The notes beneath the pieces are model-generated. The model was not told the origin of the DNA and did not search any database. It was given only the letters and a program-made list of their open reading frames with translations. From the IMG/VR virus record IMGVR_UViG_3300044846_005229, positions 215,340 to 279,339 of that record: a stretch of DNA of 64,000 bases; one strand, given 5' to 3'. The first letter of the stretch is position 1; each line of letters begins with the position of its first letter. Of the stretch, positions 26,626 through 44,240 are shown piece after piece. Made by a program: the position numbers and the translations under genes.

Positions 26626-26707
26626 TACCGAATGTCGGACTCGAACCGACACGCCTTGCGGCAATCGCTTTTGAGGCGGCCATGACTACCAATTCCATCA
26701 ATTCGGC
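26626..26707 (-). tRNA. trnL: tRNA-Leu(CAA)
   Basis: cloverleaf with long variable arm, loop CT-CAA-AA, GTTCGAGTC T-loop. Confidence 0.88.
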
Positions 26708-26835
26708 ATTTGCCCTGAGTAGCCAGCTCAAGGACTTTTTGGATGTTTGAACCGTCGCTCATTTCACCCTCCATTTTGATATGGGAGATGGGCTCCTTTA
26801 AGGAGTTAACTCCCGAGCAAGTTACTGATTGCTCA

Positions 26836-26949
26836 CCGATAGAATTTTGCTAACCTAAGTTAACAATGCACAGGTATTAATACCTGAGGGGCTATCTCCC
26901 AAAGTCTCAAGAATTCTTGAGACGCTTTTTACCCAGATATTCCGGGCAC
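26836..26949. repeat. 114-bp exact repeat, copy 1
   Basis: identical to 42372-42485. Confidence 0.95.
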
Positions 26950-26986
26950 ACCGTCTCTTTTTGGCTGGCCCAGAGAAGACGGGCTA

Positions 26987-27067
26987 TGGGGGCAGGGGGA
27001 CTCGAACCCCCACGGCCGAAGCCAGAAGTTTTTAAGACTTCCGTGTCTACCATTCCACCATGCTCCC
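26987..27067 (-). tRNA. trnL: tRNA-Leu(TAA)
   Basis: GAAGT-CT-TAA-AA-ACTTC, long variable arm. Confidence 0.92.
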
Positions 27068-27424
27068 TTGTGTGCCCCATCATAGCACCCCTTGGGTAAA
27101 AGTCGGGGCCTTTGGGGTTAGTTCGTGGCTAAATCCGAAGATGAACTAAACCCAAAGCAAACCCCTAGCCAATCAACCAATACTCAAGTAAGCCCTAGCC
27201 TCTACAATTTCCAAGCCATCCCCACCAAAGGTAAACGAAGTTTGGACTCCCCTGTGATTTGAAAATGGGCTAGAGATTGTCACCGTTAGGGAATTAGGGT
27301 TATCTAACTCCCCATAGGAAACTCTGCCCAGGGTCAACCAGTTAGATTGGAATCTATTGATGATAGACTCTTTTGAAAGTCGTGGGTATTGGAATTGCAT
27401 TTGTTTGCTAAGGCTGCCCCTAAA

Positions 27425-27868
27425 TCAGGCAGTGAGTACACATGGGGTAGATTTACCCAACTTGCTGAAATTGGCTGTTGTCACTAGTTTTACTGATTGA
27501 CTGCCGGACATCTTGGCATCCGATTGAGCACCAGCCAGCAATTTCATTTGCTTGAGGGTAGCCAGCATTTCGGTAGCTTCCTTGGCGCCATCACGGTTGG
27601 CGATAGCAAGTTTGGAATGGTTTTTGCGGGCAGAGCCATAATCACTCCCATATTGCGCCCACCAAGCATCTTGCTGCTCGATGTCCCAATCATAGGAAAA
27701 CACAGGCACATCAGAGACGGCGTGTTGGTTGGTGCGGATTTGATTTTTGCGGTTGCGTTGGCCCTGGCTGAGTTGGCTGTAGGCTTGTTTCCAGTCGGCA
27801 ATGGCTTGAAGGTAGGTTTCCTTAGTAGTGAAGGCGGTGAAGGTGGTGAATGCGGCTAGAGTTGTCAT
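27425..27868 (-). CDS. hypothetical protein
   Basis: 147 aa ORF behind promoter-like sequence. Confidence 0.7.
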   Translation of the reverse strand: MTTLAAFTTFTAFTTKETYLQAIADWKQAYSQLSQGQRNRKNQIRTNQHAVSDVPVFSYDWDIEQQDAWWAQYGSDYGSARKNHSKLAIANRDGAKEATEMLATLKQMKLLAGAQSDAKMSGSQSVKLVTTANFSKLGKSTPCVLTA

Positions 27869-27963
27869 TGTTTTTGTTGTGTGTGTGTGTTTCGGTGTGG
27901 GCTATCGACCGAGTTAGTGTAAGATGGGCCCGTGGTCGGGGCAATACGGTAAACCGACCAGGT

Positions 27964-28518
27964 TCATTTAGGGTGGGTGTCTGCTGATCTAAAACCCACT
28001 TGAGTGGGCCTGCTGTTCGGACCCTTGAACGGCACATTAACTCTGTGATCCACTATCGTTACCGGTGAATCTAAACTCAAAGTGTTACCCCCCAGATTAA
28101 TTCTTTTCACTTGGACATACTCTGCAACTTTTTGCAGATCTTCAAGTACCGCGCCACCGTTGGCCACGACCATGTCAGCAACTGCCATCAGGCTCCGGTA
28201 CTGCTTATCGTCAAACTTTAAGCCGTTGGCTTCTTTGAGAATACACAGAATAACTTTTTCTGGCCTTTTATTACTATCATCTACTACCTCAGCAATAGAG
28301 TAAAACCCTTTTATTTCAGGCGTAATGACATAGAGGCAAAAATCGCAATTTTTTCTTTGCTCAATTTCCTCAAGCCGTGCCCTGTCTGTCCATTCTTCGA
28401 CTACGGGGTTAAAATATCCCAGCAGCCGCTGCTCCAGTAGGATTATAAGTTCTTCGCGCCAAGTGGATCCATTACAAGTGCCCCCAAGGAACACTTTTGT
28501 TTGATTGTCTGAAGTCAT
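27964..28518 (-). CDS. nucleoside 2-deoxyribosyltransferase-like protein
   Basis: KVFLGGTCNGSTWRE, YFNPVVEEW, LYVITP..KGFYSIAEVVDDSNKRP. Confidence 0.8.
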   Translation of the reverse strand: MTSDNQTKVFLGGTCNGSTWREELIILLEQRLLGYFNPVVEEWTDRARLEEIEQRKNCDFCLYVITPEIKGFYSIAEVVDDSNKRPEKVILCILKEANGLKFDDKQYRSLMAVADMVVANGGAVLEDLQKVAEYVQVKRINLGGNTLSLDSPVTIVDHRVNVPFKGPNSRPTQVGFRSADTHPK

Positions 28519-28627
28519 TTTGCTGGTGTTTGTATGTTGGTGAACTTGCTGTTAAAGCTGTGTTTGTTACGAGCCTATTGTAGCTTAAAGGGGGAGCTGA
28601 GTCAAGGGGGAGGCCAAACCCCGACCA

Positions 28628-29860
28628 TCACTCAATCCAATGGGGGACCACTCGGCTTGTGTCAAGGACAATCGGCCGGTCATGATCCCTAATGATGATG
28701 CCTGCGGGTTCATTACCGACAACCCAAGACCCGATGACTGCCCGATTGTCGCCGTCCTGGAAAAGATCGGCTTTTTTCTGGTAGATGCGGGGTCCATCAT
28801 ACATGCCAGTAGTTCTAGAGGTTACCACACCTGACTCAACAATGTCAATGTTGGCCCCTTCCCGGCTCAGCATAGGCTTTACCACGTAGGATGTGGGATT
28901 TAGTTTTCCGGATGAAAACGCCTCTAATTGTTCTGGTGTTCCATGCTCCCGGAGATTCAGCCAATCCCAATCATCCACCGGGATGCCACCCTCAGTGAAA
29001 CTGGCTGGAAGGATGTTAGGGTGGTCTGGAAACATCTCATGGAGAATAGGCAAGATGCCCTTATTGCTCAGGATTGATTTCCAGATTGGCTCTACAATTC
29101 CAGAGGAACCTTTAATAGTGTGTAATCCAAACTCATCTCCCATCATCCATTCCCATGGGTATAGCTTGAACCAATACTTAATCGGATTCTCTTGGATGTC
29201 AGTGAAGTTTTCTCCATTCCAGCCAATGTCCCCCAAATCAATAAAATCTGTAGTTAACCCAGCCTGAGTAGCTAAATCTTGGAAGTAAACCAGGGTCTGA
29301 TACTCCTCTAGGCTTTCAGAATAACCTGCAAATACAAACTTGTGGCCGAACGGTACCCTTTGCCTGATTTCCTTGAATTGGTCAATAAGTTTTTCATGCA
29401 AAGAGTTGAATTGGTCTTTTCCGGGCTTAACATCCTGCAACCAGAACCATTGCATTAGCGCCGATTCAATAACCATTGTAGGAGTGTCTGCATTGTATTC
29501 CAACATCTTAGGTTGGCTGTCCCCCGTATATGCAAAGTCAAACCTGCCATATAAAGATGGGTCGCATTGCTTCCAGGATTTGGAAATCGCGGAGTGGTAT
29601 GCTGAGGGAATTCCGATTTTTGCCATTAACTCTGAATCACCCACAACCTTGTCCACAGCATCGAGGCACCGGAGTTGGCATTCCCGTGTGGCATCTTCAA
29701 GTTCGTCAATTTCAGCCATAGAAAACTCATAGGCCACAGATTCATCCCAATAGGTTCCCTCCCCATCTTTTGATGAGGTACCCGATGTGTGGTAGGTGAA
29801 CCCAATCTCTTCAGCTTTTTCTTGCCAATTAACGCGAGGTTGTAGGGTGTGACGTTTCAT
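28628..29860 (-). CDS. glutathionylspermidine synthase-family ATP-grasp ligase (YgiC-like)
   Basis: YWDES, LYGRFDFAY, KMLEYNADTPT, DQFNSLHE, FKLYPWEW, EPIWKSILSNK, KPMLSREGAN, IGSWVV. Confidence 0.93.
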   Translation of the reverse strand: MKRHTLQPRVNWQEKAEEIGFTYHTSGTSSKDGEGTYWDESVAYEFSMAEIDELEDATRECQLRCLDAVDKVVGDSELMAKIGIPSAYHSAISKSWKQCDPSLYGRFDFAYTGDSQPKMLEYNADTPTMVIESALMQWFWLQDVKPGKDQFNSLHEKLIDQFKEIRQRVPFGHKFVFAGYSESLEEYQTLVYFQDLATQAGLTTDFIDLGDIGWNGENFTDIQENPIKYWFKLYPWEWMMGDEFGLHTIKGSSGIVEPIWKSILSNKGILPILHEMFPDHPNILPASFTEGGIPVDDWDWLNLREHGTPEQLEAFSSGKLNPTSYVVKPMLSREGANIDIVESGVVTSRTTGMYDGPRIYQKKADLFQDGDNRAVIGSWVVGNEPAGIIIRDHDRPIVLDTSRVVPHWIE

Positions 29861-29944
29861 TTTGCTGTTTGGGTTGGCGGGTTGGTGCCCGGTATGATAA
29901 TTTGGGAGTCTACCCAGCCACTATAGCACAGCTTAACCCTGCAA

Positions 29945-30709
29945 TCAACTCCCACTGCCAAACCCTCGACCGCCCCCACCGAATCCGCTCCGGGCAGATG
30001 CTGACCGAGACGACGTAAACGATGAGCGTCCATAACCTCCCACAGAGCCCCTAATCGATGCACTACGGGCAGATGGCACATAGTTGCTGCTTAAGGCCAA
30101 AGATCGCCCACTAGATGGGTTGGCGCGAATGTAGGAGGTTCGCATTCCTTCCGTCAGGGAATTGGATCTGATTCCGGAGAACCCATACGAGTAATAATAA
30201 GGAGTCGGATACCAACCGCCAAGAACAACAACTGAGGTTCGATCATAATCGTCGTCCTGATTATCAAAGACCGATGGCCCCGCAACTACGGCTCGCTCCT
30301 TAAGCTCATCAGCAGTAAGGGGCCGCTCGTTGATATAGCCTTCTTCATCTTCGTATTCTGCTGTTTTTTGATCGTAGCCTTGGAGATATACAGGGCGACT
30401 ATTCGCCATGAAACCAACCATTTTAGGCAACCAAACTGTGGCACCGTCTAAAGTTACTTCGGAACATTCCTGATGACCTGCCGTCTTGCAATTAGCAGTG
30501 CTGGGGTAGCGAGGTGCCTTGAGCAGGTGGCTAAATGCTGCCCGATCATAATGCTGCTTGCAATCTTTGGTTCCAAACTTTTCACATTCTTCTATAGTTG
30601 AAAAAATCTTCTGACCTTCCAAGCTGGGTTGGGGTTTGGAGCAAGCTGTCAATGTGATGGCCGTCATGGATGCAATGAGGACCAAAGAGATGGATTGTGT
30701 GTGTTTCAT
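29945..30709 (-). CDS. DUF1190/YgiB-like lipoprotein
   Basis: lipobox LTAC, Cys pattern, APRY, W.PKMVGF, C-terminal RSGFGGGG; upstream of GSP synthase. Confidence 0.8.
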   Translation of the reverse strand: MKHTQSISLVLIASMTAITLTACSKPQPSLEGQKIFSTIEECEKFGTKDCKQHYDRAAFSHLLKAPRYPSTANCKTAGHQECSEVTLDGATVWLPKMVGFMANSRPVYLQGYDQKTAEYEDEEGYINERPLTADELKERAVVAGPSVFDNQDDDYDRTSVVVLGGWYPTPYYYSYGFSGIRSNSLTEGMRTSYIRANPSSGRSLALSSNYVPSARSASIRGSVGGYGRSSFTSSRSASARSGFGGGGRGFGSGS

Positions 30710-32279
30710 TGGTGGTGTTTGGACTTTGTATGTATGGTAAGGCCTATAGGGGGTTTAGAAACCCATTGAAGTTAGGCGCTAAACCAGCAAGTACCACCAT
30801 GGCGAAACTCAGCTTGAATCTGCTTGTAGGTGCAGCGTTTATTGTCCGCAGGACTAACCCTTGACAACCCTTCAGGAAGCTCCGTATACTCGGAGAGAAG
30901 TTTGACTTCAATGTCTTTGGTACTAATGTCAGGAATCATCTTGGTTTTAATGTCAGGAATTGCTTTTTGGACAAGCTTTTTTTAAAGCCATGATGGCGGA
31001 AAGGGTGTTTCGAACTTCAGTCGGGGTTCTGCACCACCCTAAAGCATTGGAAACTTGTTTGCGGCTGGAGCATAACTCTTCGGCCCAAAATCTAAACAGT
31101 TCGGCATCTTTGTCATCGTTGGGGGCATCCATATTTAGTCTTTGTGTCCTGAATCTGCATTCCGCTCAAAACCCGAAGCAATAGATCTGATATAACTTTG
31201 AGTCTTCTCAGTCACACCAAAATTACAGATGTTTGGAGGGGCACCTGCCGCCCAGCGTGCAATCAGTTCGTCTTCCAATTCCGGGGTGTGGCGTGAGCGG
31301 GTACGCAAGTACCAAACATCATGAGCACAATTCACGGAAACACCAAGTTCGGTTGCTAGGTCTCTCATGTATTGCTCCAACTCCTCGTAGTATTCGTTGA
31401 GAATGTCCTCGTCAAATACGGTGGAAGCTTCGTTGGAGATTTGCTCAGGTGTCATTTTGCGGTTGGGTGATGATTGGTTAGCTGAAGGTATCGTATTGGT
31501 TTTGGCCTAAAGGGTCAAGGTTCGGGAACCCCGCCTTCAACATTGTTTGGCGTACTTTCCTTCGGTATGAACTTTGGTTTTGATTCCAGAATAGACGGGC
31601 ATATAGATTTGTCCACCGATGAAACCCAATCTAAAATAGTTCCTAACTAGAAAATTTTCAAAGTTTGTTTCTGTTAGGGACGTAACTTGGTGCATTGTTT
31701 CCAAGGTGCTGCATTGGGTTTGAAGCCGTGTGTTTTGGCACCGGAGTTCCTGGTTAAGGTCGTCCCAATTCAAAAGATAAGGTTTCGTGTGCTTCATGAC
31801 TGATTGCCACGGGAGATTCTCGCAAGGATTGCCTTACCGATTTATTGCCAAATAGTTAAGGGTTTCGGTGGCTAGGGTACCCATTGGTTTTGGGCTTTGC
31901 AGTTCCAGTCAAAATTTTGATAAGGGGGGAGGTTAACTTCTATGCAATAGGCCCCGCAAAGGTTGCAAAACCTCCATTTATCTTGTAATTCTCGGGAGCT
32001 AAAGTCACCAGGGGTGCTGTGGCCGCATGTAGAGCAGTTTTTGATTGGGAGTTCGCTCATTGTTCTTAGTGTGGGGAATCGAATGCGGGACTTTGATTGG
32101 CCCTGATGGTCTGTGGCGGGGTAAATTCTTAGCGCCTTAACTTAGCTACTATAGGTTGTTTTCTCCGGGGTTACCAGGGCGGTTATCCCTACTAAAAGGG
32201 ACGGTAATTACACCATCGGAAGGGGGGAGCACCCTGCCGCATGGGGGACGAACCCTGTGCATCATCACCGATAAGGCAA

Positions 32280-32738
32280 TCAAAGCCCTAGAAGTTTACG
32301 ATCTTCGGGGTCGAGTTTTGAAAGGGCAGCTTGTCGTTTACGGTGGTTTTCTTCTACTTCAAGACGAGAGCGTCTAATGTACTCAATCACTGAGAAGGCA
32401 TTATCGATTTCGTATACTAAATTACAGTAGTCAGAGTAAGAGTAGCTATCTTGATACAACGCAAGATTAAGGCTGTTACCTGAGAGGCTGAAGTTTGAAT
32501 TATGGATGGTAAGTTTGAATATATTGGGTTCCGGTTGTTTTAGGGTATAATCAATGACCTCTTTATCTAGTTCTGAGAGCAAATTAAGGATAATACCAGG
32601 AAAAGCATGGAAGTAGGAATCCATTTCCTTCTTTTGAATCTGAGCAGCGGCGGCCTTTAATTCAGCTTCTTTTTCCAGACGTTGCTGCTTGCGGAGAGCT
32701 TTTTCTTCGTCGGATAGTGGTTGCTTGGGGCTTGGCAT
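32280..32738 (-). CDS. hypothetical protein (ALSKLDPEDRKLLGL-tail family)
   Basis: shares C-terminal motif with 33322 and 33742 ORFs. Confidence 0.75.
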   Translation of the reverse strand: MPSPKQPLSDEEKALRKQQRLEKEAELKAAAAQIQKKEMDSYFHAFPGIILNLLSELDKEVIDYTLKQPEPNIFKLTIHNSNFSLSGNSLNLALYQDSYSYSDYCNLVYEIDNAFSVIEYIRRSRLEVEENHRKRQAALSKLDPEDRKLLGL

Positions 32739-32764
32739 AGTCTGCTTAGGGTTTGGGGTCGGGG

Positions 32765-32859
32765 GTGTTGGTGCTATTATAGGTCGTTTACTTTCGGGTG
32801 TGGGTGCGGATTCCCGTACAAAAAGGTTCGGTAATTACACCATCGGGAGCCGAAGTCAA
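32765..32859. repeat. intergenic promoter-cassette repeat, copy 2
   Basis: runs from stop codon of upstream gene to TATAAT box. Confidence 0.92.
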
Positions 32860-33209
32860 AACCCTGGTAGGCCACATTCCTTAAGCCAACCATCATACCA
32901 AATCTGAGCCGAACCACGGATCACTTCGTCAACCATGTCCGTCAGGATCCACTCTTGGCTTGAATGAAATGGTGCGCTTCTTAGATGCACATACCGGTGA
33001 CCTGCCCAGTAGTCTAGAAACGTCCGGTCTTCGTTCGGGAAGATATCAAAAAGTAGCTGACTCATGAGCGGACGCTTATCGATGCCTCGACTCATTTTGT
33101 CAAGCGTAACTTTGACGGCCGCTAGTTGGTCTTTGGTAAGGGTGTTTTTCGGGATTGCATCAAGGTTGACTTTTCCGGTAGGGGTCGTTGCTAGTGGATG
33201 ATAAGGCAT
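32856..33209 (-). CDS. hypothetical protein flanked by direct repeats
   Basis: 117 aa ORF between repeat copies 2 and 3. Confidence 0.75.
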   Translation of the reverse strand: MPYHPLATTPTGKVNLDAIPKNTLTKDQLAAVKVTLDKMSRGIDKRPLMSQLLFDIFPNEDRTFLDYWAGHRYVHLRSAPFHSSQEWILTDMVDEVIRGSAQIWYDGWLKECGLPGF

Positions 33210-33230
33210 TGGCTCGGGGGTATGACGGGA

Positions 33231-33325
33231 GTGTTGGTACTATTATAGGTCGTTTACTTTCGGGTGTGGGTGTGGATTCCCGTACTTTTAGGTTCGGTAA
33301 TTACGCCATCGGGAGCCGAAGTCAA
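33231..33325. repeat. intergenic promoter-cassette repeat, copy 3
   Basis: near-identical to 32765-32859. Confidence 0.92.
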
Positions 33326-33690
33326 CGAATCCCAAGTGCGTCCCTTTGCTCAGGAGTCAACGCTTCCTTTGCTACCCTCCTTGCTTCCGCCTTAACTTTT
33401 TCCGCTTCCTTTTGTTTTCGGTGGCTTTCACGCCGCTTCTCATATTCCTCGTCGGTCTCCTCTCTAATTTTGTAATACTTAGTTTCACACATTGCGTACT
33501 CATGGCCGTAGTCGTTATCGATCCACTTTTCGCTATCTATGTGGGTGAAACCCTCGTTTAAGATATCTTGAAGATACGCAATAACTGCTGAAATTTCCCT
33601 ACTGAAAACATCAGTGGCATTATCCGTGTATTGCTCTTTTTTAGACTGCATTTTGTAGTCAGTTACAGTTAGCCTTTTGAGTTTTGCCAT
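33322..33690 (-). CDS. hypothetical protein, paralog of 33742-34101
   Basis: EGFTHID...REETDEEY...LTPEQRDALGI. Confidence 0.8.
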   Translation of the reverse strand: MAKLKRLTVTDYKMQSKKEQYTDNATDVFSREISAVIAYLQDILNEGFTHIDSEKWIDNDYGHEYAMCETKYYKIREETDEEYEKRRESHRKQKEAEKVKAEARRVAKEALTPEQRDALGIR

Positions 33691-33741
33691 TTTGCCTTTG
33701 TTTTTGTTTTCAAAAGAACTTTAAAGGAATGCCATAACAGA

Positions 33742-34101
33742 TTATTGACTAATACCCAAAGCCTCTCTTTGCTCCTGAGATAGTCCCGCAATAGTCACCC
33801 TCCGTCTTTCCGCTTTTTCTTCCCTTTCTAATTCAACTTTCAGTCGTGCCTGATACTCTGCGTCAGTTTCCTCTCTTTCTTTGAAATAGGAAAGATAAGC
33901 TGTACCGAGTCCATCCCATCCAGAGATGTCTACGTCTAAGGTCGTAAAACCTTCATCTATGAGAGACTCGATATAGTCCGCAAGTTCCCTTAGGTTTCTA
34001 GGGAGGTACCTCAAGTCATCTTCAAGTTTTTCTTGTCTGTGGATGTTGTGGGTGAATAACCCTAACTTGTATTCTTTAATTAGTTTCTTTGTTTTTTCCA
34101 T
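33742..34101 (-). CDS. hypothetical protein, paralog of 33322-33690
   Basis: EGFTTLD...REETDAEY...LSQEQREALGI. Confidence 0.8.
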   Translation of the reverse strand: MEKTKKLIKEYKLGLFTHNIHRQEKLEDDLRYLPRNLRELADYIESLIDEGFTTLDVDISGWDGLGTAYLSYFKEREETDAEYQARLKVELEREEKAERRRVTIAGLSQEQREALGISQ

Positions 34102-34319
34102 TTTGGTTTAGTGATTTGTTGTGTAGGGAGCCTATCCCTTTGTGTCCCAACCAGTGTAAAGCACCCTGTACATGACTTAATGGGAACCTAGTGGCATGCA
34201 ACTTTAAGCAACCAAATGGAATGGACGATGCCAAACACAAATGCCACGCCAATTAGTCCACTGACCCAACCAACTCTGCGCCCATGTTCGTGAATTTTGG
34301 TGTCCGCTGGGGTTGGCAA

Positions 34320-34574
34320 TTAGCATCTCATGATGGGACCATTTTGTGGGGGCCTTTGAGCAGGGTTTGTTGGCGGGACAGGCACTGAAGACCCTGAGTG
34401 AATCTCATTCAAGGCACCCTGAGCCTCAGGACCCCCAAAGCTCGGGTCAATCTCATGGTAGAAAACCATGTTGAGGTGGTTGCGGATAACTTGGATTTGG
34501 TCCGGAGTAAGAGATTCAGGGTTCCCAAGTTCAAAGAGCCCTTGTAGCCAATAGCAAAAGTTGCGGGATGTCAT
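34320..34574 (-). CDS. FCxWLQG-family small protein
   Basis: MTSRNFCYWLQGLFE...GPIMRC*. Confidence 0.8.
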   Translation of the reverse strand: MTSRNFCYWLQGLFELGNPESLTPDQIQVIRNHLNMVFYHEIDPSFGGPEAQGALNEIHSGSSVPVPPTNPAQRPPQNGPIMRC

Positions 34575-34590
34575 TTTGGTTGCGGGAAGG

Positions 34591-34683
34591 TTAATGGTTG
34601 GTGTAGCAGTTGAGACCAAGGGATTTAGGGTCATCAAGTTCAAAGAGTCTTTGAAGCCAGTAGCAAAAGTTATGGGATGTCAT
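34591..34683 (-). CDS. truncated FCxWLQG-family mini-ORF
   Basis: own translation MTSHNFCYWLQRLFELDDPKSLGLNCYTNH*; nucleotide duplicate of the start of 34320-34574. Confidence 0.6.
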   Translation of the reverse strand: MTSHNFCYWLQRLFELDDPKSLGLNCYTNH

Positions 34684-35069
34684 TTTGGTTTTGGTGGTTG
34701 ACGGCCACCAAGGGATTCAACTTGCCCTGACATACCTGTGGGCCCCAGTGAGCTGCTCCCTCTAACGACCCTCCATGTGGTTGTACCATCGGGTTGTCGC
34801 TGCTCGATCTGAATGGCTTGATCTGGGTCAAACCCGTGCTTGGCTATGAATGCTTGAAGAACCTCTTCGCGCTGAGATAGGATTGGGTTTACTATGTTTT
34901 GTAAACTGTTGTGAAACTCTTGTAGTTCCTTATTGTCTGGGCTCTTCCTCGGTACCCCATACGACCCGGCCACGGCGGCGATGACTTCAGCTTGGTCTGA
35001 GTTGAGTTCAATTCCTGTTATACTGAGGATGTAGCCTTGCAGCCAGTGGCAAAAGTCGCGTGATTGCAT
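34680..35069 (-). CDS. FCxWLQG-family protein
   Basis: MQSRDFCHWLQGYIL. Confidence 0.75.
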   Translation of the reverse strand: MQSRDFCHWLQGYILSITGIELNSDQAEVIAAVAGSYGVPRKSPDNKELQEFHNSLQNIVNPILSQREEVLQAFIAKHGFDPDQAIQIEQRQPDGTTTWRVVRGSSSLGPTGMSGQVESLGGRQPPKPK

Positions 35070-35120
35070 TGTCGTGTTTAGATTGAGTGTGAATTTCAAT
35101 AGGATTATATTCGGGTCCAG

Positions 35121-35312
35121 TCAGCAGCGGGCGATCTCGCCGTTCGGGAATGTCGGTTGGTGCCACCCTGGTTTAGTTGGCTCTGGGCCTTGAACCAAGT
35201 GGACTTTTTCAAGATTGTTGCGGACCCTGTCAATTTGGTCTTGGTTAAGTTCGGTTCCAGTAACGCCTAGGATGTAGCCTTGAAGCCATGTTACAAAGTC
35301 AGTTTTGTTCAT
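35121..35312 (-). CDS. FCxWLQG-family small protein
   Basis: MNKTDFVTWLQGYIL...GEIARC*. Confidence 0.75.
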   Translation of the reverse strand: MNKTDFVTWLQGYILGVTGTELNQDQIDRVRNNLEKVHLVQGPEPTKPGWHQPTFPNGEIARC

Positions 35313-35332
35313 TTTGTGAGTGGGGAGTGAAA

Positions 35333-36271
35333 TTAAGAGCAGTAGAGGGGCCAATTATCGTTGCTGCGGGAATTTTCTTCGTAGTCAATAGCACCCTGAA
35401 CAACAGAGAGGAGAATCTTGTGCCCATCAACATCAATATTCTGACTACCCTCGTGACCTCCGGGGGTCCACAGTTTTCGGGTCCTATCCATGAAGGTGCC
35501 AATAAAGATTCCCTTTAGGCAATCAGAAAGAAATTCCCTTAAGTTGTGCAGTCTTTCATCAACTTCGAGAATTTTTCCTGTCGCGATACTAAACGCAATA
35601 TCATTGATATTAACTGAAGAGGCACTCTCATAACTATCAAATGCCCCGATCAAGATTTGTTCTGTGAAAGACCCTGCTGAATCTAAAGCGTATTTGATTT
35701 TGTTAAGCCCTAGGGCAGGATAGCTCACGGGGGTTGATTCACCTTCACTATCAGACATCGATAATCTACATTTTAGTTTATCAATGATGTCTCCGAGGTG
35801 TTCTAGGCAATCACCGTATGAGTATGACTTTGAGTCCATATAGTTGTACATTGTGAATTTAATAAGAATCTCATCTACGACATCCTTACGCATCATTGTA
35901 AATTTAACCGGGATCTTGCGTGGAGAACCTACAAAGAGTCTATCCTCATGACAAGCCTCAAAGAATTTGTCAATGTTAAAGTCGTCTCGCTTAACGGCAA
36001 TGTCGTGGTATCTATTGTCACGGACTTCTAACTCTACTAAGTTTTCACGGAGAGCGTCCAAAATGTATGGTAAACCCACCCCAGAGGAGTTCTCTCCGCC
36101 GCCATAATCATCGTATTCGCTGTAAAAGGGAAGAAGGCAAGGTTTGAAAAGACATGTTGAATAGCAGTAGTCGCTTTTATCGACTTTTTCCTCCAACACA
36201 AACACATAGACCGGTTGCCCAACGTAGATGTGAAGGTTGGAGATTCCGCAAGTTTTGTTCCAGCAGCCCAT
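35333..36271 (-). CDS. conserved phage hypothetical protein
   Basis: MGCWNKTCGISNLHI...YDDYG motif. Confidence 0.8.
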   Translation of the reverse strand: MGCWNKTCGISNLHIYVGQPVYVFVLEEKVDKSDYCYSTCLFKPCLLPFYSEYDDYGGGENSSGVGLPYILDALRENLVELEVRDNRYHDIAVKRDDFNIDKFFEACHEDRLFVGSPRKIPVKFTMMRKDVVDEILIKFTMYNYMDSKSYSYGDCLEHLGDIIDKLKCRLSMSDSEGESTPVSYPALGLNKIKYALDSAGSFTEQILIGAFDSYESASSVNINDIAFSIATGKILEVDERLHNLREFLSDCLKGIFIGTFMDRTRKLWTPGGHEGSQNIDVDGHKILLSVVQGAIDYEENSRSNDNWPLYCS

Positions 36272-36336
36272 TTTGAAGTTGTTTTGGTTTTAGTATTGGT
36301 TTTAGTTGAAGGTAATAGATGATGGTCGCAGGGCAA

Positions 36337-36672
36337 TTAGCAATTTATTGCCGGGGGCCACAACCTACCGGGTCCCTCTGGCTGATAGTGAGGGTAGCGA
36401 CCAGGAATGGGGGGACCTTCGTAGGTCCATTTTTGGTGTTCCCACAACTTTTTCAAAATCTCATCAGGGAGTTGCCGACCGATATCGGTGGTTGGGTCAA
36501 CCTCAGGCCGCTCTGTCAGTATAGCACGGTCAGAGTCAGGCTCAGGGTGGGTGAAAACCGTATCGAGCTTTGTCTTTAGAGTAGTTAGTTGCTCCGGGCT
36601 TAGGCTGGTACCGCAACCTTCGAGAAAGCCCTGTAGCCAAATGCAGAATGTTGCTGGTGTTTGTGTGGTCAT
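36337..36672 (-). CDS. FCxWLQG-family protein
   Basis: TPATFCIWLQGFLE...PAINC*. Confidence 0.8.
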   Translation of the reverse strand: MTTQTPATFCIWLQGFLEGCGTSLSPEQLTTLKTKLDTVFTHPEPDSDRAILTERPEVDPTTDIGRQLPDEILKKLWEHQKWTYEGPPIPGRYPHYQPEGPGRLWPPAINC

Positions 36673-38692
36673 TGTGTTGTGATGTCCGGGAATTTAAAGA
36701 CGTTTTTGGAATCCATACGGATAGATTTCAGAAATTTACAATGCTTTACATATTCAATATCGAAGCTAGTTGCGTAAGCATCAATATCATTTTGATCGGC
36801 CACAAGGAGCCAACCTTCCGGGTCTATAATCCCCTTTCGTAGAGCAGCTAACCTCCACCATAGGGATGGGTGTTTTGCCATGGACATCGCCCAATGGTAT
36901 TTAATGAAGTATTCACCTTCTTCGAGACTAATTTTTTCAACTCTACCGAAACCGCCAACTGTTTTGCTACGGTCACCGACCGTAATAGAAAATGTATTTT
37001 GTGGTTCTCCGTGGGAGATGTTGTCATAGGTCAAAAAGCCAACCCCGAAGCAAGGGTTCTTAAAGTCCATAGGGCAACCTTCTGTAGTTGAAGCTAAAAC
37101 ATAGTCATCAATTTCTGGTATGGTTGTGCCTACGAGGTGTTCGTGATTCCAACTTACAGTTATCTTTTTGGCTTGATTGAGGGTTAATTTTCCTTTTTCA
37201 ATCGCACCCACTAGCTCTATTGGGAGTGAGTCAATCATTGTGGGTTCGGTCCGGGCCCCGGCCATGTAATTACTTTGCAGTTTTTGAAGCAATCTGGGTA
37301 GTTGGCCTGCATGAATTCATATGTTTTGAGACCTATGAGTAATGGTGTTCGTTCCCTAGGCATTAATGCGTGTCTTAGGATGTCCTCTTTAAGTTTTTCG
37401 AGGTCTTTGATGGGGTCTCTTTTCGGTTGTTCCCAGCTTTGATGGTTCTTACTCATTGTCAATCATTGTCAGATTGAGTGTGATTTGTTATTTGCCACAG
37501 TCAACGGTAACCTACAGCAATGTAGTCTTTCATATGCGACTCAGGGATTTCTTTTGTGGCACCATCGGCGTAAAACATGCGCTCTGCAACGAACCAACTA
37601 CCAGTGTACATTCGCGGACTTGAACGGTAAATGTGGTACAAGTTCCCGTCTCGCAGATTGCGAAAGATTGTCTCGGTACGATCACCAGACTTTCGATCTA
37701 ATTCGAAACCGAAACCTTGTTCAACCAATTGCTTGAGGGTGACTTTTAACATTTTTGATTTATTGAGGAGTTGGAAAGGTTACAATGACCCTGTCACGAC
37801 TGCTAGAATGTCTTCTTCACTTCCAAATGGGCACTTACCGTTAGCGTAAACGGAAATACGATTGTAACCTTTGTAATCATTTCTATAAGAAATTTGCCAC
37901 AAGTCACCATCCCAGCTTACCTCGTGAACGGTAATAATCCTATTGTCTCGAAGAATTAGGCGGTCCCCTGGCTTGACGATGTGGCCGTCAATGGTTACGG
38001 GGGGTGTCTGAGGTAGTCTTTTTATGTGTGTTTGCTGACATTTCGGTTGGAATCAATGCTACAACACGACGAAGCAAAGCAACCTGTTCAGAGCTGAGTC
38101 CTGTATCTCCGTCATCTAAGACGGTTGGCAGGATTTGGTTAAGTAATGCCGCTCTTTCTCGCTTCAGGGCCAGCTTAGGGTCGGGCACCCAGTCGGGGGT
38201 GTGGAGCCAAGGCAACAGGTCTGGCCTGTTTCCGTAATTCTTGAGTGCTCCGGCGTGGTTTGAAGCAACGGACGTCCAGTGCGTGTTTCTCCAGTATCCG
38301 TATTCAAGAATCTGCACCTGCCCTCGCTGGTCCCCATCCGCCTCAGTCGGTGGCGCGTTCCGGATACCATCGGTCGGCATTTGGTATTTCAATGCTTCGG
38401 CTGCCTGGGCAGCACCCCACCGGGCCCAGAAGGTTGCAGATTGAAGCTCATTGCCGTATGTTCTTGCGACATAGTTGACAAAATTCTCGGAAGCAGTGAT
38501 GCTGTTTGGATTGAATGCCATGATTGTTTTTAGATGGGCGAGGAATGGTGACAAAGCAACTATACTGCCTTCGCCCCGCAGAAACAAGCCGGGGAACCGA
38601 ACCGGGTGGGGCGGTTATCCGACTTTGCCGTGTTGGTAAAAAAGTTTTTTACCATTGCGTTCATACTTTTTGAAATTTTTCGAGTGTTAAAA

Positions 38693-38763
38693 ATCCCCTA
38701 GACAGAATTGAACTGTCGTCTCTCGCTTACAAGGCGAGTGCATCACCACAATGCTTTAGGGGC
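38693..38763 (-). tRNA. trnT: tRNA-Thr(TGT)
   Basis: CTCGC-CT-TGT-AA-GCGAG; G1.A72 mismatch. Confidence 0.85.
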
Positions 38764-38773
38764 AAGCGTTTCC

Positions 38774-38801
38774 ATTATAGCATGGCTTGGCAAAAAGTCA
38801 A
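38774..38801 (-). promoter_or_regulatory. sigma70-type promoter for tRNA-Thr
   Basis: TTGACT-16 nt-TATAAT. Confidence 0.75.
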
Positions 38802-38891
38802 TGCCCCCAAAGTCAGGGTGCCGGTTTTGACACCCCGCGCCTCTAGATTACGGACTGTAAGGGCCAATAAACGGGATGCCCCCCCTCTCTC

Positions 38892-39323
38892 CTACACCAC
38901 AACCAAGTTATCACGAACCCAATCAGATGAGTAAGAATACACCTCATCATCAATACCAATAGCAACATAGTCAGGGTGTGAGACCGTGGTATCGCCTTCC
39001 CTTGTTTTAAGGATTACGGTGACCTCAAGGGGGACGGGGACAAATTTGCACAGGGCACTGCGGCGATACATGCCAGAATTAGGCTCAGTTTCTTCCCAGG
39101 AGCCAGGAAAAATATCAACCTTACACGGGTACGGCTGTGACCCATCGACCGGCATCAGTACATAGTCAATGCCTTCGACGGCAGTTAAATCACCCCTTTC
39201 TCGGGGGAAGACTTCGGTACCGACCGTCGGGCGAATGCGGACCAGGGTTTTTCGTCTTGCAGTCAAGGGTTGCCCGAAAGCTGCGATGACTTCGGTTCCG
39301 GTTGTGAATGTAAGGGTTGTCAT
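38892..39323 (-). CDS. hypothetical protein (two-repeat PGDYG-like)
   Basis: T/E.RGD...DYV...G..Y repeated twice. Confidence 0.6.
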   Translation of the reverse strand: MTTLTFTTGTEVIAAFGQPLTARRKTLVRIRPTVGTEVFPRERGDLTAVEGIDYVLMPVDGSQPYPCKVDIFPGSWEETEPNSGMYRRSALCKFVPVPLEVTVILKTREGDTTVSHPDYVAIGIDDEVYSYSSDWVRDNLVVV

Positions 39324-39545
39324 TTTTGATGTTGGTTTGGGTGGTGGGTTTAGGTTTGGAGCTAGACGGTTAGACCCCCGTAGTTTAGCAGGCCACTAGG
39401 GCAAAGTCAAGGGTGGTTCCAGGTCCGTGAGGGAATTTGGAATGGTAACTCTTCGTCAGATTTCCTGGTATGTCGTCCCTCCTGGCAATGAGATACCGCA
39501 TCAACGCATCACAAATTGTGCTAGGGGGAACCAAACTGGGTACAA

Positions 39546-39962
39546 TCAGTTCCGATTGGTCGGAGCAGTCAGGATTGGTAACCCGCCTTGGTTGGGCGCT
39601 ACGAAATAGGTCTTGTTTCCCTTTTCCGCCCCTTCCTCAATGTGTTGAATCTGCAGGAACGTCAAATACTCAGGGTTATCCTTAAGGCTGGCACCAATAA
39701 TTTTATTGGATTCTGCGATACCTTCAGCTTCTTTGATGCGAACTTCTTTCAGCTTTTCGGCACTATCGAGTTTAGCTTGGGCTTCCAAAACTGCTACTTG
39801 GCGCGTATATTCGGCCTTTTGCAACTCGGCTTTTCCTTCCAGGGACTGCTGCCAGACTCCGTATTGGGGAAGTACAAACATTGCGGTCGCAATGATGGCC
39901 GCCAAAAGGAATGCCAGGATGCCAAAAATGACGCCGCCTGAGTAACTGTCTGAGTGCTTCAT
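39546..39962 (-). CDS. membrane-anchored SPFH/prohibitin C-terminal-like protein
   Basis: TM helix, PQYGVWQQ..EGKAEL, AEGIAESNKIIGASL..NPEYL; start reassigned to MKHSD. Confidence 0.7.
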   Translation of the reverse strand: MKHSDSYSGGVIFGILAFLLAAIIATAMFVLPQYGVWQQSLEGKAELQKAEYTRQVAVLEAQAKLDSAEKLKEVRIKEAEGIAESNKIIGASLKDNPEYLTFLQIQHIEEGAEKGNKTYFVAPNQGGLPILTAPTNRN

Positions 39963-40037
39963 GGTGCGATTGGTTGTTGGTGGTTGGTTGTTTGAGGTAG
40001 TGATTTGGCCTAATCGGGGGGGGAACCCGGTAGGCAA

Positions 40038-40113
40038 AGTTCCAGGCCGGATTCGAACCGGCGAAAATGCGAGTTTTGCAGACTCGTGCCTTAGACCACT
40101 TGGCGACTGGAAC
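40038..40113 (-). tRNA. trnC: tRNA-Cys(GCA)
   Basis: CGAGT-CT-GCA-AA-ACTCG, U73. Confidence 0.93.
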
Positions 40114-40836
40114 ATTCGATTGTATTATAGGGTGCCCAATGGGCGAGTAAACCGATTAGACTCGGATCGTGTTGAAGCCATTCTCAAAACCGTCACCGTA
40201 CCCTTGGCTATAGGCTTTTGTGTCGATTATTCTGCACCACTCCAGGAAGTGTTCGAGAGATAAGTCCCCAGCGGCTACTGTTTCAAAGATCTCAGTGGCT
40301 GTGGGATAGACCACAAACAGTTCGTCAAAGGTTTTCATAGTTGTTGATCTGTAGAATGGTTCTTTTGTTGGAGTCTACGTGCTTTCCTAGCAAACCTTTT
40401 CCAAATTTGTTTGGCGACTTTCGTAGGAAAGTCTCTCATCTCCCTAAGGTATCGGCTCTGATTTCGACTTACTGGTTTTGCCATTTCTCTTCAAGAAAAT
40501 CGGTGTCTTGCTGAGTTATCTTGTGAAGCCTTTCGTAAAATTGTTCTAACTTTTGATCGACCTCTTCTCTGTCTACTGTCATTGGCATGTTCAAGCGGGC
40601 GTCTTCTAATGATGACAAGGCATCACGAACTAAAGTTTTGAGGGACCCTACTTGTTTTCCAAGATGGTGCATCTCGTCTCGCTGCTGTTCTAGGGGGGGG
40701 GGGTCAATGTTTGCCATTGTGTTGGGAATTTGAAGCCGTGGATACTATAGCACCTTACACAGGGTAAGGCAAGCCCCGGAACTGGCCTAGACAGGGAGGC
40801 AAACCACCCTTAACCAATTTGTAGACTCCCATGGTT

Positions 40837-41202
40837 TCAGAGTTGGGAAAGAGTAAGCCCCAAGTAGCAAAATTGATGAAGGAGCTGATCAAAACCGATC
40901 AAAACCCAAAAAGCTTTGTCAGTAGTGGACATTCCAAGCTTTAGGGTGATATTCTGCTTTGACCAATCGATGTGGTAGTGGAGCATACCGTCAATGGCCC
41001 CTAAAACTAGGGCCACACTTGGCAGAAAAGGAAAGGTAACCAGCACTGTTGCCAATGCGTGTTTTATCGAGTGTTGGATTCCAATTGGATGCAAGTAAGT
41101 GCCTTTATGCTTCACTTCGTCTTCCGTTTGTAGACACCAATCTACCGCGAAGTGTTTAATAAGGAGTAATGAAAGCAAGGCTAAGGCTTTTTGAGGGTCC
41201 AT
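40837..41202 (-). CDS. DUF3307 membrane protein
   Basis: KHFAVDWCLQ, HSIKH, HYHIDWSK, IGFDQLLH. Confidence 0.85.
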   Translation of the reverse strand: MDPQKALALLSLLLIKHFAVDWCLQTEDEVKHKGTYLHPIGIQHSIKHALATVLVTFPFLPSVALVLGAIDGMLHYHIDWSKQNITLKLGMSTTDKAFWVLIGFDQLLHQFCYLGLTLSQL

Positions 41203-41250
41203 GGGAACTTGTAAGGCAAGTTTACAACTTGGGTGCGTATCTTAGTGTAA

Positions 41251-41322
41251 TGGGGGATATCGGGCTTGAACCGATGGCGGCCTGTTTGTAGGACAGGTGC
41301 TCTACCACTGAGCTAATCCCCC
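41251..41322 (-). tRNA. trnV: tRNA-Val(TAC)
   Basis: CCTGT-CC-TAC-AA-ACAGG. Confidence 0.88.
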
Positions 41323-41703
41323 AATAAAGACCAACGATGACCACCCCTACTTCAGTCCAAGACAATAAAAACGGAATTTTGTATCACATTGGGGCCGAAA
41401 TACACGGAACCTTCCTCAGTTACACAAAAGTAGTACTTAAGATCCTCCAAGTTAGTAGTCAGCATTTCTTCGAGCGCTTTCCTTTGGGACTCTGAGAAGG
41501 GTTGCTCCACAGAGACAAAAGTTCCAAGAGGGGTGATTGCTTTGATTTTCATGATTGGGTGGGTAGGGTTCAGGGAGCAAGTTGAGGGGGAATTCAACTT
41601 TGTTTTCCATGGGCCAATCATAGCGTTTCTGCGCGGCAGAAACAAGGGAGAGAACCGAACCGGATAGCACGGTAGACCGACCCTCCCTAGAGCAGTGACC
41701 GCC

Positions 41704-42303
41704 TTAGATAGCAACCGGTGTAAATACTCCATAGTATGCCCTGCCATAACAGCCGGATTCAGCCAACGTAGTAACACGACCTGTCTGCCCTATCCACCCA
41801 TTAAGAGCATCTTCGGTAAGTTCATGGGGGTGGCCATCATGAGCAGGAATGTCGATCCACTCGAAAATTCTAAAAATCGGTGCAGCTTTTAGGGCGTTAT
41901 GAACGATTTTGGCAGGGTCTACCGTATGTTGTAAACAGTTATACATCCATACCTCATCCCACCCCGTGTCTTCAATATCCTCACCCATCGAAACTGAAAC
42001 TGAGACGTTATTACTCGCGTATCGATCAACGGTCCATTTAGGGTAGGATACCGGGTCTACGACTTTGCCTTCAGTTAAGTTGATGGTTTTAAGCAAAAGG
42101 CTGCTGGGACCACCACCGATATCAAGGATTCTTTTGCCCCCCACATCAAAACTATAATGGGTCCGATGCAATCCCATTAATCTCCCGTAGACGAATTGCT
42201 TCTGTTCCTCGTCAAAGGTATTGCAGCAGTTACCCCAGTATGACCTTTCAAAGTCGTAGTCGTTGCTGCGATCGTTATGGTTGCCGTAGTCGTTATGGCT
42301 CAT
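41704..42303 (-). CDS. class I SAM-dependent methyltransferase-like protein
   Basis: KRILDIGGGP, VVDP, DEVWMYNCLQHTVDP. Confidence 0.8.
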   Translation of the reverse strand: MSHNDYGNHNDRSNDYDFERSYWGNCCNTFDEEQKQFVYGRLMGLHRTHYSFDVGGKRILDIGGGPSSLLLKTINLTEGKVVDPVSYPKWTVDRYASNNVSVSVSMGEDIEDTGWDEVWMYNCLQHTVDPAKIVHNALKAAPIFRIFEWIDIPAHDGHPHELTEDALNGWIGQTGRVTTLAESGCYGRAYYGVFTPVAI

Positions 42304-42343
42304 TTCAGTGGGTTAAATTTGTGATATTTGCGCCAGCAAATTA

Positions 42344-42575
42344 TGGCGGACCGGAGAATTGAACTCCTATTCCGATAGAATTTTGCTAACCTAAGTTAAC
42401 AATGCACAGGTATTAATACCTGAGGGGCTATCTCCCAAAGTCTCAAGAATTCTTGAGACGCTTTTTACCCAGATATTCCGGGCACCATGTTGGCAGTAGA
42501 TGCTAAGCTACTGGCCTTAGTATTAAAACTGAGGACTTAGACCTGTGCGTCTTACCTGGATTTCTCCAACCCGCA
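42344..42575 (-). ncRNA. expanded tRNA-like RNA A
   Basis: GCGGGTT/GGTCCGC acceptor, GGAG-TTCAATT-CTCC T-arm, about 190-nt structured interior with GCACAGGT/ACCTGTGC helix. Confidence 0.6.
42372..42485. repeat. 114-bp exact repeat, copy 2
   Basis: identical to 26836-26949. Confidence 0.95.
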
Positions 42576-42606
42576 GTGAGGTAATGAACTGAAGAAGCAA
42601 CCTTCA

Positions 42607-42723
42607 GACTTAAGGGAACCTTAAGATTTGAGTTATGGCCAGAAGGTCATACAAGATGGTTGGGTTTCTATAGCAAAGAAATTTGTAAATTGCTGAACCA
42701 TCTTAGTTTTGTGCTAGCAAAAC
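42607..42723 (-). ncRNA. CAGCAA hairpin RNA motif, copy 1
   Basis: AAGATGGTT-CAGCAAT...TTTCT-TTGCTAT-AGAAA...AACCATCTT; similar to 43144-43262. Confidence 0.65.
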
Positions 42724-42724
42724 A

Positions 42725-42796
42725 TGGCGGAAGCTGGATTTGCACCAGCGATCTTCAGGGTATGAGCCTGACGAGATTCTACTTCTCTACTCCGCG
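42725..42796 (-). tRNA. trnM: tRNA-Met(CAT), initiator-like
   Basis: TCAGG-CT-CAT-AC-CCTGA, C1 unpaired. Confidence 0.85.
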
Positions 42797-42824
42797 TTAT
42801 TGTACCGTGTGTTAATTACGGTAA

Positions 42825-42895
42825 TCGGGATGGAAGGTACTGCCCCTTCTATTCTGCTTCCCAAAAGCAGTGTGATACTTTTCTACTACACCCCG
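42825..42895 (-). tRNA. trnP: tRNA-Pro(TGG), atypical T-loop
   Basis: CTGCT-TT-TGG-GA-AGCAG; C1-G72, A73; T-loop GGCAGTA. Confidence 0.8.
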
Positions 42896-42919
42896 ATGTC
42901 TACCTAATGTTACCCTTCC

Positions 42920-42973
42920 GGTTCCATGCCCATGCTTGCAAAACAGGTGCCCCCCCAATTGAGCTATGACCCC
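42920..42973 (-). pseudogene. degenerate tRNA-Ala(TGC), 3' half lost
   Basis: GGGGTCATAGCTCAATTGG...CCTGT-TT-TGC-AA with no T-arm or 3' acceptor strand. Confidence 0.65.
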
Positions 42974-42977
42974 GTGT

Positions 42978-43118: not shown

Positions 43119-43143
43119 TTTATCAGGGTTTGTGTGGCCATCC

Positions 43144-43262: not shown

Positions 43263-43264
43263 AA

Positions 43265-44200: not shown

Positions 44201-44240
44201 ATTTTGTATGTTGCTTCGGTAATGTTTACGTCAGCAAAAG

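Follow-up and report, generated by a model that had tools for sequence, protein, structure and literature searches.

Two gene-less repeats in the tRNA region of a lake-water jumbo phage are very probably right ends of an IS607-family TnpA/TnpB transposon

Background

Insertion sequences (IS) of the IS607 family, among them ISXfa1, ISFba1 and CboIStron, are mobile genetic elements that combine TnpA, a serine recombinase with a MerR-type helix-turn-helix (HTH), with the RNA-guided nuclease TnpB. Their hallmarks are GG termini, integration at or after GG, and G-rich target-adjacent motifs (TAMs) such as AGGAG and GAGGG (PMC13565253, PMC11061315, 10.1101/2023.11.20.567912). In ISXfa1, the activity of the right-end RNA (reRNA) requires a pseudoknot between its apical loop and the nucleotides flanking the guide, and a ‘pro-Fanzor’ signature has been reported in less than 1% of TnpBs (10.1101/2023.08.09.552727). 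Here we examine a stretch of 64,000 nucleotides (nt; hereafter the window), positions 215,340 to 279,339 of the IMG/VR virus record IMGVR_UViG_3300044846_005229, in which a module of 114 bp occurs twice among tRNA genes. We conclude that this module is very probably the right-end segment, encoding the guide-RNA scaffold, of a TnpA/TnpB transposon of the IS607 family that is mobile among this phage and its relatives.

The module can also be set beside systems outside the IS607 family. In ISDra2 and other IS200/IS605 elements the guide RNA of TnpB (omegaRNA) has, like the module, a scaffold that overlaps the 3' end of tnpB and stops at the right end of the element, the guide being taken from flanking DNA; in cryo-electron microscopy work on ISDra2 TnpB this scaffold is reportedly of the order of 100-130 nt, which is close to the size of the module. 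The two systems differ in their transposases (an HUH Y1 enzyme as against a serine recombinase), in the TAM, which is AT-rich in IS200/IS605, and in their end structures, and they have no sequence similarity. Miniature inverted-repeat and palindrome-associated transposable elements (MITEs and PATEs) derived from IS200/IS605, together with orphan guide RNAs, are likewise short and gene-less, keep an end and a scaffold, and are found in several copies and contexts; stand-alone omegaRNA loci are said to have been described by Altae-Tran et al. in 2021. A further parallel is SegB of phage T4, a selfish DNA-cutting system that lies in a phage tRNA cluster and is present or absent between related phages, but SegB is a gene for a protein endonuclease, whereas the copies in the window would represent the RNA-guide part alone and are known from sequence.

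The repeated module and its distribution

The virus record comprises 279,339 bp with direct terminal repeats and is rated complete; the window is its last 64 kb. A preliminary description of the window, made from its letters, had drawn attention to an exact 114-bp repeat containing perfect palindromes, and both observations are confirmed. Positions 26836-26949 (copy A) and 42372-42485 (the greater part of copy B) are 100% identical over 114 bp, and the whole genome holds exactly two copies of the module, as found by a sequence search and by a covariance-model search. Each copy contains a perfect 20-mer palindrome (26904-26923 and 42440-42459) and a perfect 16-mer palindrome (26871-26886 and 42407-42422). 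An exact 114-mer repeat within 64 kb cannot have arisen by chance. Since the minus strand carries every long open reading frame (ORF) and all 17-19 tRNA genes between 24 and 46.5 kb, the module is read on the minus strand, as are all features below unless stated otherwise.

That the repeat might be a collapsed or chimeric product of assembly has the exact identity of the two copies as its only argument, and its probability is negligible. The 42-kb locus with its own flanks recurs in independent IMG/VR and metagenome assemblies (L006/L016, L010/L017 and L049), as does the 26-kb locus with its own flanks (L027, L028 and L048), and in an independent lake DNA run (X4) the module is joined to the 26-kb flank, with about twofold depth over the module. 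Because both sets of junctions recur in independent contigs and in this DNA run, the misassembly that the preliminary description had raised as a possible refutation is excluded.

Among related phage contigs the module is found with sharp ends in at least eight different flanking contexts, and its presence differs among close relatives. A scan of viral contigs with the 20-mer palindrome recovered it from five other contigs, at 91-100% identity and with flanks mostly unlike those of either window locus. Five metagenome matches to a 19-mer (L044, L045, L051, L055 and L058) were rejected as chance. A blastn search of GenBank phages with the 26.7-27.0 kb region gave no match, and a search of 185,579 species-representative bacterial and archaeal genomes with a TnpB profile and an 18-mer pattern found no relative, the two 18-mer matches failing to extend.

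The parent element

In the related lake-phage contigs L005, L011, L008, L033/L036 and L052 a full-length element is present, at different sites, which comparison of insertion sites delimits at 1762 bp. The elements of L005 and L011 are 99% alike, and those of L008, L033/L036 and L052 are about 77% alike to that of L005. Copy A corresponds to positions 1649-1762 of this element, and copy B, which matches the parent for 3 nt beyond the repeat (42372-42488, 117 nt), to positions 1646-1762; both are 100% identical to the L005 element. Gene conversion between the two loci, by which the preliminary description had sought to explain their identity, is therefore not needed.

An ORF of 197 aa in L005 and L008 matches the Resolvase profile (3e-17 and 8e-19) and the MerR profile (1e-7) and adjoins tnpB upstream; by these matches it is identified as TnpA, a predicted serine recombinase with a MerR-type HTH. 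The ORF that enters the module in L005, L011 and L008 matches OrfB_IS605, HTH_OrfB_IS605 and Cas12f1-like_TNB, and its domain content identifies it as TnpB. In this reading frame the module begins three codons past the Asp of the RuvC-III motif and consists of the last 31 TnpB codons and the stop codon, which stands 19 nt before the right end of the element (...CTATCGG). The earlier picture of non-coding RNA modules being shuffled thus gives way to that of a DNA transposon, of which the module comprises the 3' end of tnpB and the terminal 19 nt. By tblastn the window copies match TnpB residues 505-536 only (507-536 for copy A). Element lineages that are only 77% alike overall still agree at 91-93% over the module, as expected for a segment coding for both protein and RNA.

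The terminus of the element is GG, its left flanks are AGAGG, TAAGG, AAAGG (twice) and GAGGG (twice), and neither terminal inverted repeats nor a target-site duplication are present at the six insertion sites examined. The features that define membership in the IS607 family are found together here: TnpA, a TnpB that overlaps the right end, GG ends, and mobility with empty sites. As in ISXfa1, ISFba1 and CboIStron, a serine-recombinase TnpA with a MerR-type HTH is accompanied by TnpB, the element ends in GG and inserts after RRGG motifs, which resemble the known AGGAG and GAGGG TAMs, inverted repeats and target duplications are lacking, and the structured right-end RNA has a candidate pseudoknot (see below). 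It differs from these elements in that the module has no Rfam match (RAGATH-18 included), that its hosts are lake-water jumbo phages, and that the window copies lack both genes. The RAGATH-18-derived reRNA of ISFba1, moreover, lies entirely downstream of the gene, whereas the scaffold in the module is nearly all inside tnpB, with 19 nt non-coding.

In the TnpB of the full-length element (L005 6863-8023, L008 1659-2819) RuvC-I bears a DPG motif, the catalytic Glu has moved to a place 6 residues ahead of the zinc-finger position, and most of the zinc-finger cysteines are missing. The DPG motif and the shifted Glu are shared with the ‘pro-Fanzor’ TnpBs of IS607 elements (10.1101/2023.08.09.552727), a likeness to that clade by motif only, and the loss of most of the cysteines is a difference from it.

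The window contains no tnpA, TnpA being known from the full-length relatives. A BLAST search of the window with the full element matched only the two modules, and one with the left-end region (a 30-nt flank plus the first 400 nt of the element) gave chance hits only, so that the window copies are without a left end; no left-end sequence lies near either of them. The two-ended arrangement of MITEs and PATEs is found only in the mini-element of L009, described below, and the window copies, which keep the right end only, are therefore not MITE-like mobilisable elements.

In copies of the L005 type a perfect TTGACA-N17-TATAAT sequence lies antisense to tnpB at IS positions ~1600-1640, just inside the module boundary. 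The idea that the module is an operator upstream of this divergent consensus promoter was dropped, as the promoter lies inside tnpB and is not conserved in copies of the L008 type.

Structure of the scaffold

Pairs were counted on an alignment of 14 module copies (12 distinct) under a five-helix structure. In this alignment 94.8% of cells are paired, compared with 30-51% in slid controls, and 13 pairs are changed on both sides, a value that 0 of 500 shuffles reach. Four hairpins, H1 to H4, are maintained across diverged copies by compensatory substitutions, and the module is therefore probably an RNA domain. On its own it folds with z = -4.3.

The hairpin nearest the 5' limit, H1 (26930-26948; copy B 42466-42484), is paired in 78% of cells, a figure lowered by the non-homologous rows of a second family of copies (family 2, see below); in the lineage of L029, L035 and L056 it shows a double change from G-C to A-U that is made of two synonymous codon changes. 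H2, which is the 20-bp palindrome at 26904-26923 (copy B 42440-42459), is 100% paired with six of its eight pairs changed on both sides, and its compensation extends to family-2 copies in which the entire stem sequence is replaced and pairing is still 100%. H3, the 16-bp palindrome at 26871-26886 (copy B 42407-42422), is 98.6% paired and includes one pair that is G-C in six distinct sequences and A-U in six. In H4 (26847-26866; copy B 42383-42402), which is 99% paired, changes are to G-U or U-A only. A pairing between the module and 42541-42548, which the preliminary description had reported, appears in a single-sequence fold only and competes with H3, which has the support of covariation.

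A small hairpin, GGG-AGAUAG-CCC, can further be read at 26889-26900 (copy B 42425-42436). Its loop sequence, GAUAG, could pair with the CUAUC at 26838-26842 (copy B 42374-42378), which occupies positions -7 to -3 and stops 2 nt before the element end, and the two would form a candidate pseudoknot next to the guide position, an arrangement that mirrors the loop-to-guide-flank pseudoknot of the ISXfa1 reRNA. Rfam, RAGATH-18 included, matches nothing on the module in the window (gathering score), in 42200-42750 (E<=10) or in seven related loci, and there is no Intron_gpI match in the window that would indicate a group I catalytic core.

The 42-kb locus and the broken tRNA-Met

At its right end copy B adjoins the 28-nt 3' fragment of an initiator-type tRNA-Met (42344-42371), made up of the variable loop, the T arm, the acceptor strand and the discriminator base. 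The fragment is 100% identical to nt 47-74 of an intact tRNA-Met in the related contig L018 (2342-2415), or to 30 nt (45-74) when the terminal GG of copy B (42372-42373), which coincides with the GG of the tRNA target, is counted. The L018 gene is identified as initiator-type by the three G-C pairs of its anticodon stem and by a mismatch at 1:72; its first 44 nt are absent from the whole genome to which the window belongs. In the same neighbourhood L018 has an intact tRNA-Tyr and this tRNA-Met upstream of a 199-aa gene, where they replace the window-specific 5' flank and the module. The intact tRNA of L018 reads ...CCCAGAGG|AATAGGAGTTCAATTCTCCGGTCCGCCA, with the insertion site at AGAGG|AAUAGG, and the empty site ...CCCAGAGG|AATAGGAG... 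of L018 corresponds to ...CTATCGG|AATAGGAG... in the window. By comparison of these two alleles, the match shows a right junction for copy B that is entirely typical of IS607, with the insertion placed behind AGAGG in the tRNA-Met variable loop. The search for empty sites in relatives proposed in the preliminary description was thus successful for copy B, and none was found for copy A.

That description had also portrayed the locus as a tRNA-like scaffold. The part at 42344-42371 is indeed a true tRNA fragment; as to the rest, neither ARAGORN (introns up to 400 nt, with the search for transfer-messenger RNA, tmRNA, switched on) nor the Rfam tRNA model (E<=10) finds a tRNA or tmRNA across 42343-42600. 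The first 20 nt of the tRNA fragment (42352-42371) stand at the position where the guide of an omegaRNA would be read. The equivalent 20 nt after the right end of copy A are 26816-26835, and both of these guide-position 20-mers are unique in the genome.

On its other side copy B is bordered by a hairpin-rich, locus-specific 5' flank (42486-42600), of which the first three positions (42486-42488) are identical to the IS and are thus counted with copy B. At about 42570-42576 it has a stretch, TGCGGGU, resembling the 5' end of the lost tRNA. Beyond 42488 the flank lies outside the IS, and since BLAST against all fetched loci finds the module flanks in orthologous loci only, the flanks are not part of the element. 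Folded as a single sequence, the 42-kb region adopts a closed structure, with a 13-bp helix between the 5' flank and the tRNA fragment (z = -3.3). We infer that copy B arose by insertion after AGAGG in tRNA-Met, followed by a deletion from inside tnpB (IS position 1646) leftwards that would have taken most of tnpB, tnpA, the 5' part of tRNA-Met, the spacer and part of tRNA-Tyr.

A spacer of ~125 nt is repeated at 85-88% directly after tRNA-Met and tRNA-Phe (42601-42724 and 43138-43263, with a part at 44628-44673). The copy after tRNA-Phe (43138-43263) was considered as an uninterrupted paralogue of the 42-kb locus and rejected, as the similarity ends before that locus.

The 26-kb locus

Copy A (26836-26949, 114 nt) is a solo module without tnpA or tnpB. 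Its setting (26625-27067) consists of tRNA-Leu(UAA) at 26987-27067, a 37-nt hairpin flank, the module, a 127-nt flank and tRNA-Leu(CAA) at 26625-26708, in agreement with the hairpin-rich spacer between two tRNA-Leu genes reported for it at the outset; this spacer measures 278 nt and folds with z = -5.6. Orthologous copies with two substitutions are present in L027 and L028. L025 and L026 are without tRNA-Leu(UAA), the module and its 3' flank, and their join is not clean, so that they provide no empty site for copy A. Near neither copy of the module, here or at 42 kb, was a promoter-like site found, and any transcription would hence come from read-through of the tRNA array.

Derivatives in related phages

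All derivatives of the element keep the exact right end, and it is the 5' limit that varies. The solo derivative L010a and its orthologues keep 171 nt and L007 keeps ~165 nt, while the mini-element of L009 (188 bp) consists of 148 nt of the right end fused to 40 nt of the left end. A second gene-less family (L031, L034, L046 and L054) has only the last 70-96 nt in common with the module, has its own conserved 5' domain (GTTGAGCCNTNTGGAAGC) and shows a covarying replacement of H2. L010a is a clean insertion behind TAAGGG, its empty site being represented by window positions 45853-46000, and some solo copies, at the least, thus arrive by insertion rather than by decay in place; the inserted piece starts at an internal GGTTCTAAAA, a mimic of the true left end GGTTCTTAAA. 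The nested series with its fixed right end would also fit one-sided aborted copying during break repair or homing. In L009 two group I introns are recognised by Rfam (5067-5319 and 5438-5719; 58.9 and 83.1 bits), ~1 kb from the mini-element and without overlap.

The genomes differ in what they carry. One complete relative (G003) has one full element, and another that is 98% complete (G005) has none; in G001 (48% complete) a full element, a mini-element and a solo copy occur together, no two of them with the same guide position, and the available sequence of G002 (46% complete) contains two solo copies and lacks a cognate full-length tnpB. The complete genome of the window has two solo copies and no cognate tnpB. 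Its only TnpB, a canonical protein of 416 aa, is 23% identical to that of the element and has an unrelated 3' region, and for these reasons it is unlikely to use the scaffold of the module. This gene lies outside the window (G000:C1 ~6.4-7.7 kb; L014 1285-2535) and has strong OrfB_IS605, TNB and HTH matches; no adjacent transposase was found.

Origin and status of the two copies

We propose that an IS607-family element of 1762 bp, with tnpA and with tnpB for an RNA-guided nuclease, circulates among lake-water jumbo phages, and that its last ~115 nt, from after the RuvC-III motif to the terminal GG, would encode an omegaRNA/reRNA scaffold of four hairpins and a loop-to-tail pseudoknot, with the 16-20 nt past the element end serving as guide. 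The two window copies are tnpB-less derivatives cut down to exactly this segment, possibly as products of abortive double-strand-break repair or homing. Of the mobile RNA domain envisaged in the preliminary description, the mobility stands, given at least eight contexts, and the RNA nature is probable from the compensatory changes; it is not a free module, being instead the right end of an IS607 element. With no cognate TnpB encoded anywhere in the complete genome, neither copy is able to move or cut by itself. Both end within 3 nt of the base of H1 and so keep exactly the full scaffold, for which a guide-RNA role (transcription, TnpB binding and guided cleavage) is predicted by analogy; should they be transcribed together with the tRNA array, any action would depend on TnpB from a co-infecting relative. 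The copies are thus non-autonomous, and they are probably recent remnants without activity of their own. Their use as guide genes in trans during co-infection is a minor possibility, kept alive by the scaffold-exact ends, by the identity to L005 despite differing flanks, and by the low divergence of 42343-42616.

Several observations weigh against the proposed explanation. Although their flanks are unrelated, the copies have almost coincident 5' breakpoints (IS 1646 and 1649), which simple random decay does not predict, and copy B shows a replacement at its 5' junction instead of a clean insertion. Positions 42343-42616 show 1 difference in 274 nt from L017, against 5-7% nearby; such conservation could mean a function beyond that of a relic, and could also mark a co-conversion tract. 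GAUAG and CUAUC are both invariant in 14 of 14 aligned copies and, without variation, offer no covariation for the candidate pseudoknot. Finally, two metatranscriptome runs (X19 and X20) from a ~92%-identical relative yield contigs that hold the 5' flank and the tRNA stump and carry, in place of the module (42374-42488), 174 other letters that start with the anticodon arm of a tRNA-Tyr. Judging from a 30-nt loose end, these letters would be the 3' part of tRNA-Tyr, a spacer and the 5' part of tRNA-Met, which by the lengths in L018 come to ~170-174 nt; the allele was not recovered in two scans of viral contigs.

Set against the remnant interpretation is the view that the solo copies are maintained, working guide-RNA genes, transcribed in the tRNA operon, released by tRNA processing and loaded in trans onto a cognate TnpB, which would cut the module-free allele of rival phages (for example, an intact tRNA-Met) and so drive co-conversion of the tRNA region or exclusion. 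Both copies keep the full set of H1 to H4 and the tail and nothing more, are oriented as all the tRNAs and genes are, and are identical to an active-looking element in L005, even as flanks differ by 3-10% between phages. G001, moreover, unites full element, mini-element and solo copy with three different guide positions, in the intact tRNA allele of L018 a suitable AGAGG adjoins a sequence that matches the guide-side flank at 28 of 28 positions, and T4 SegB, as cited in PMC13565253, is a precedent for a homing endonuclease that favours a phage tRNA region. We nevertheless consider this unlikely: the genome is complete and without a cognate TnpB, the RNA-run contigs over the 42-kb locus come from a module-free relative, no promoter-like site lies nearby, the high identity is equally explained by recent arrival, and an empty target for copy A was not found. 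Its strongest form, in which scaffold-only copies in a phage tRNA operon are selected as trans-acting guides that cut rivals with the TnpB of a co-infecting relative, is more doubtful still. Were it true, one nuclease with many dispersed guides would serve in phage-phage competition, a step from the transposon guide towards CRISPR-like trans guides, and the shared 5' limit at the base of H1 would mark the functional minimum of the scaffold.

The palindromes might alternatively act as DNA, as sites for a TnpA dimer or another regulator or as an antisense terminator, so that the copies persist as recombination or regulatory sites. The perfection of the palindromes over 20 and 16 bp speaks for this, as do the sites for TnpA that IS607 right ends must hold, the overlap of ISXfa1 reRNA stem-loops with TnpA repeats (10.1101/2023.08.09.552727), and the appearance of L010a, where TnpA seems to have inserted a sub-element beginning at an internal left-end mimic. 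The complete replacement of the H2 stem in family 2 at 100% pairing and the change of H3 from G-C to A-U on both sides, however, fit a maintained structure rather than a fixed sequence recognised by a protein; the T-run after H2 does make it score as a terminator-like hairpin on the plus strand, where there is little to stop, all window genes being on the minus strand. We regard this explanation as improbable, and it is in any case compatible with an RNA reading. Far less probable is the model of the preliminary description itself, an RNA domain moved by gene conversion between unrelated non-coding RNA genes, one of them tRNA-like. It could draw on the closed fold at 42 kb with its 13-bp helix, on the fold of the 26-kb spacer and on the unusual conservation of 42343-42616, but the parent of the module is the end of a protein-coding transposon, the tRNA-like part is a fragment of a gene intact in L018, searches of the locus with Rfam and ARAGORN return neither a tRNA nor any other family, the module by itself accounts for much of the fold signal, and the identity to L005 leaves conversion nothing to explain. 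That model is largely refuted.

If the preferred reading of the copies as IS607 right ends holds, what was seen as a shared RNA module can now be annotated as right ends, or guide scaffolds, orphaned from an IS607/TnpB transposon; no current RNA family covers this scaffold. IS607/TnpB elements would be active in freshwater jumbo phages, where they insert in tRNA genes and leave scaffold-sized remnants in nuclease-less genomes. The full element, the 188-bp mini-element, the solo copies of 171, 117 and 114 bp and the second family with 70-96 nt form a series of natural deletions with which the minimal guide scaffold of a Fanzor-like TnpB can be defined, and the same set of natural variants allows a test of whether orphan guides act in trans.

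Other features of the window

The 42-kb locus lies within a dense array of 15-16 tRNA genes on the minus strand (38693-45852 and 46160-46933), including a tRNA-His at 44240-44312, and a gene for a Thg1-like tRNA-His guanylyltransferase (Pfam 2e-27) follows the array. A 55-nt inverted repeat (11157-11211 and 46001-46055, 95% complementary) brackets 34.8 kb with tRNA genes and both copies of the module; its sequence is also found just upstream of the L010a insertion in the relative. At 10582-10844, on the minus strand, Rfam reports cyano_tmRNA at 72.8 bits, just above the gathering score and overlapped by a permuted-tmRNA match, which suggests a phage-borne two-piece tmRNA; its cyanobacterial type is a hint at a cyanobacterial host. 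A glutathionylspermidine synthase gene (28628-29860, minus strand; Pfam 1e-128) has its best phage relatives in proteobacterial jumbo phages, at 37-45% identity; a protein search with it gave no pointer to the host.

Three further groups of repeats were seen. A motif of 50-80 nt, GCAGAAACAAG...GAACCGAACCGG, recurs at minus-strand gene starts (3775-3824, 17531-17616, 38552-38626 and 41599-41684) and may be a shared promoter or 5' leader. A family of 100-nt repeats (82-92%) lies near small minus-strand ORFs at 20017-20116, 32179-32222, 32760-32859 and 33226-33325. Long arrays with a 9-nt period at ~58579-60000, rich in CCNGTNGCN on the plus strand, suggest a collagen-like Gly-X-Y repeat protein encoded on the minus strand.

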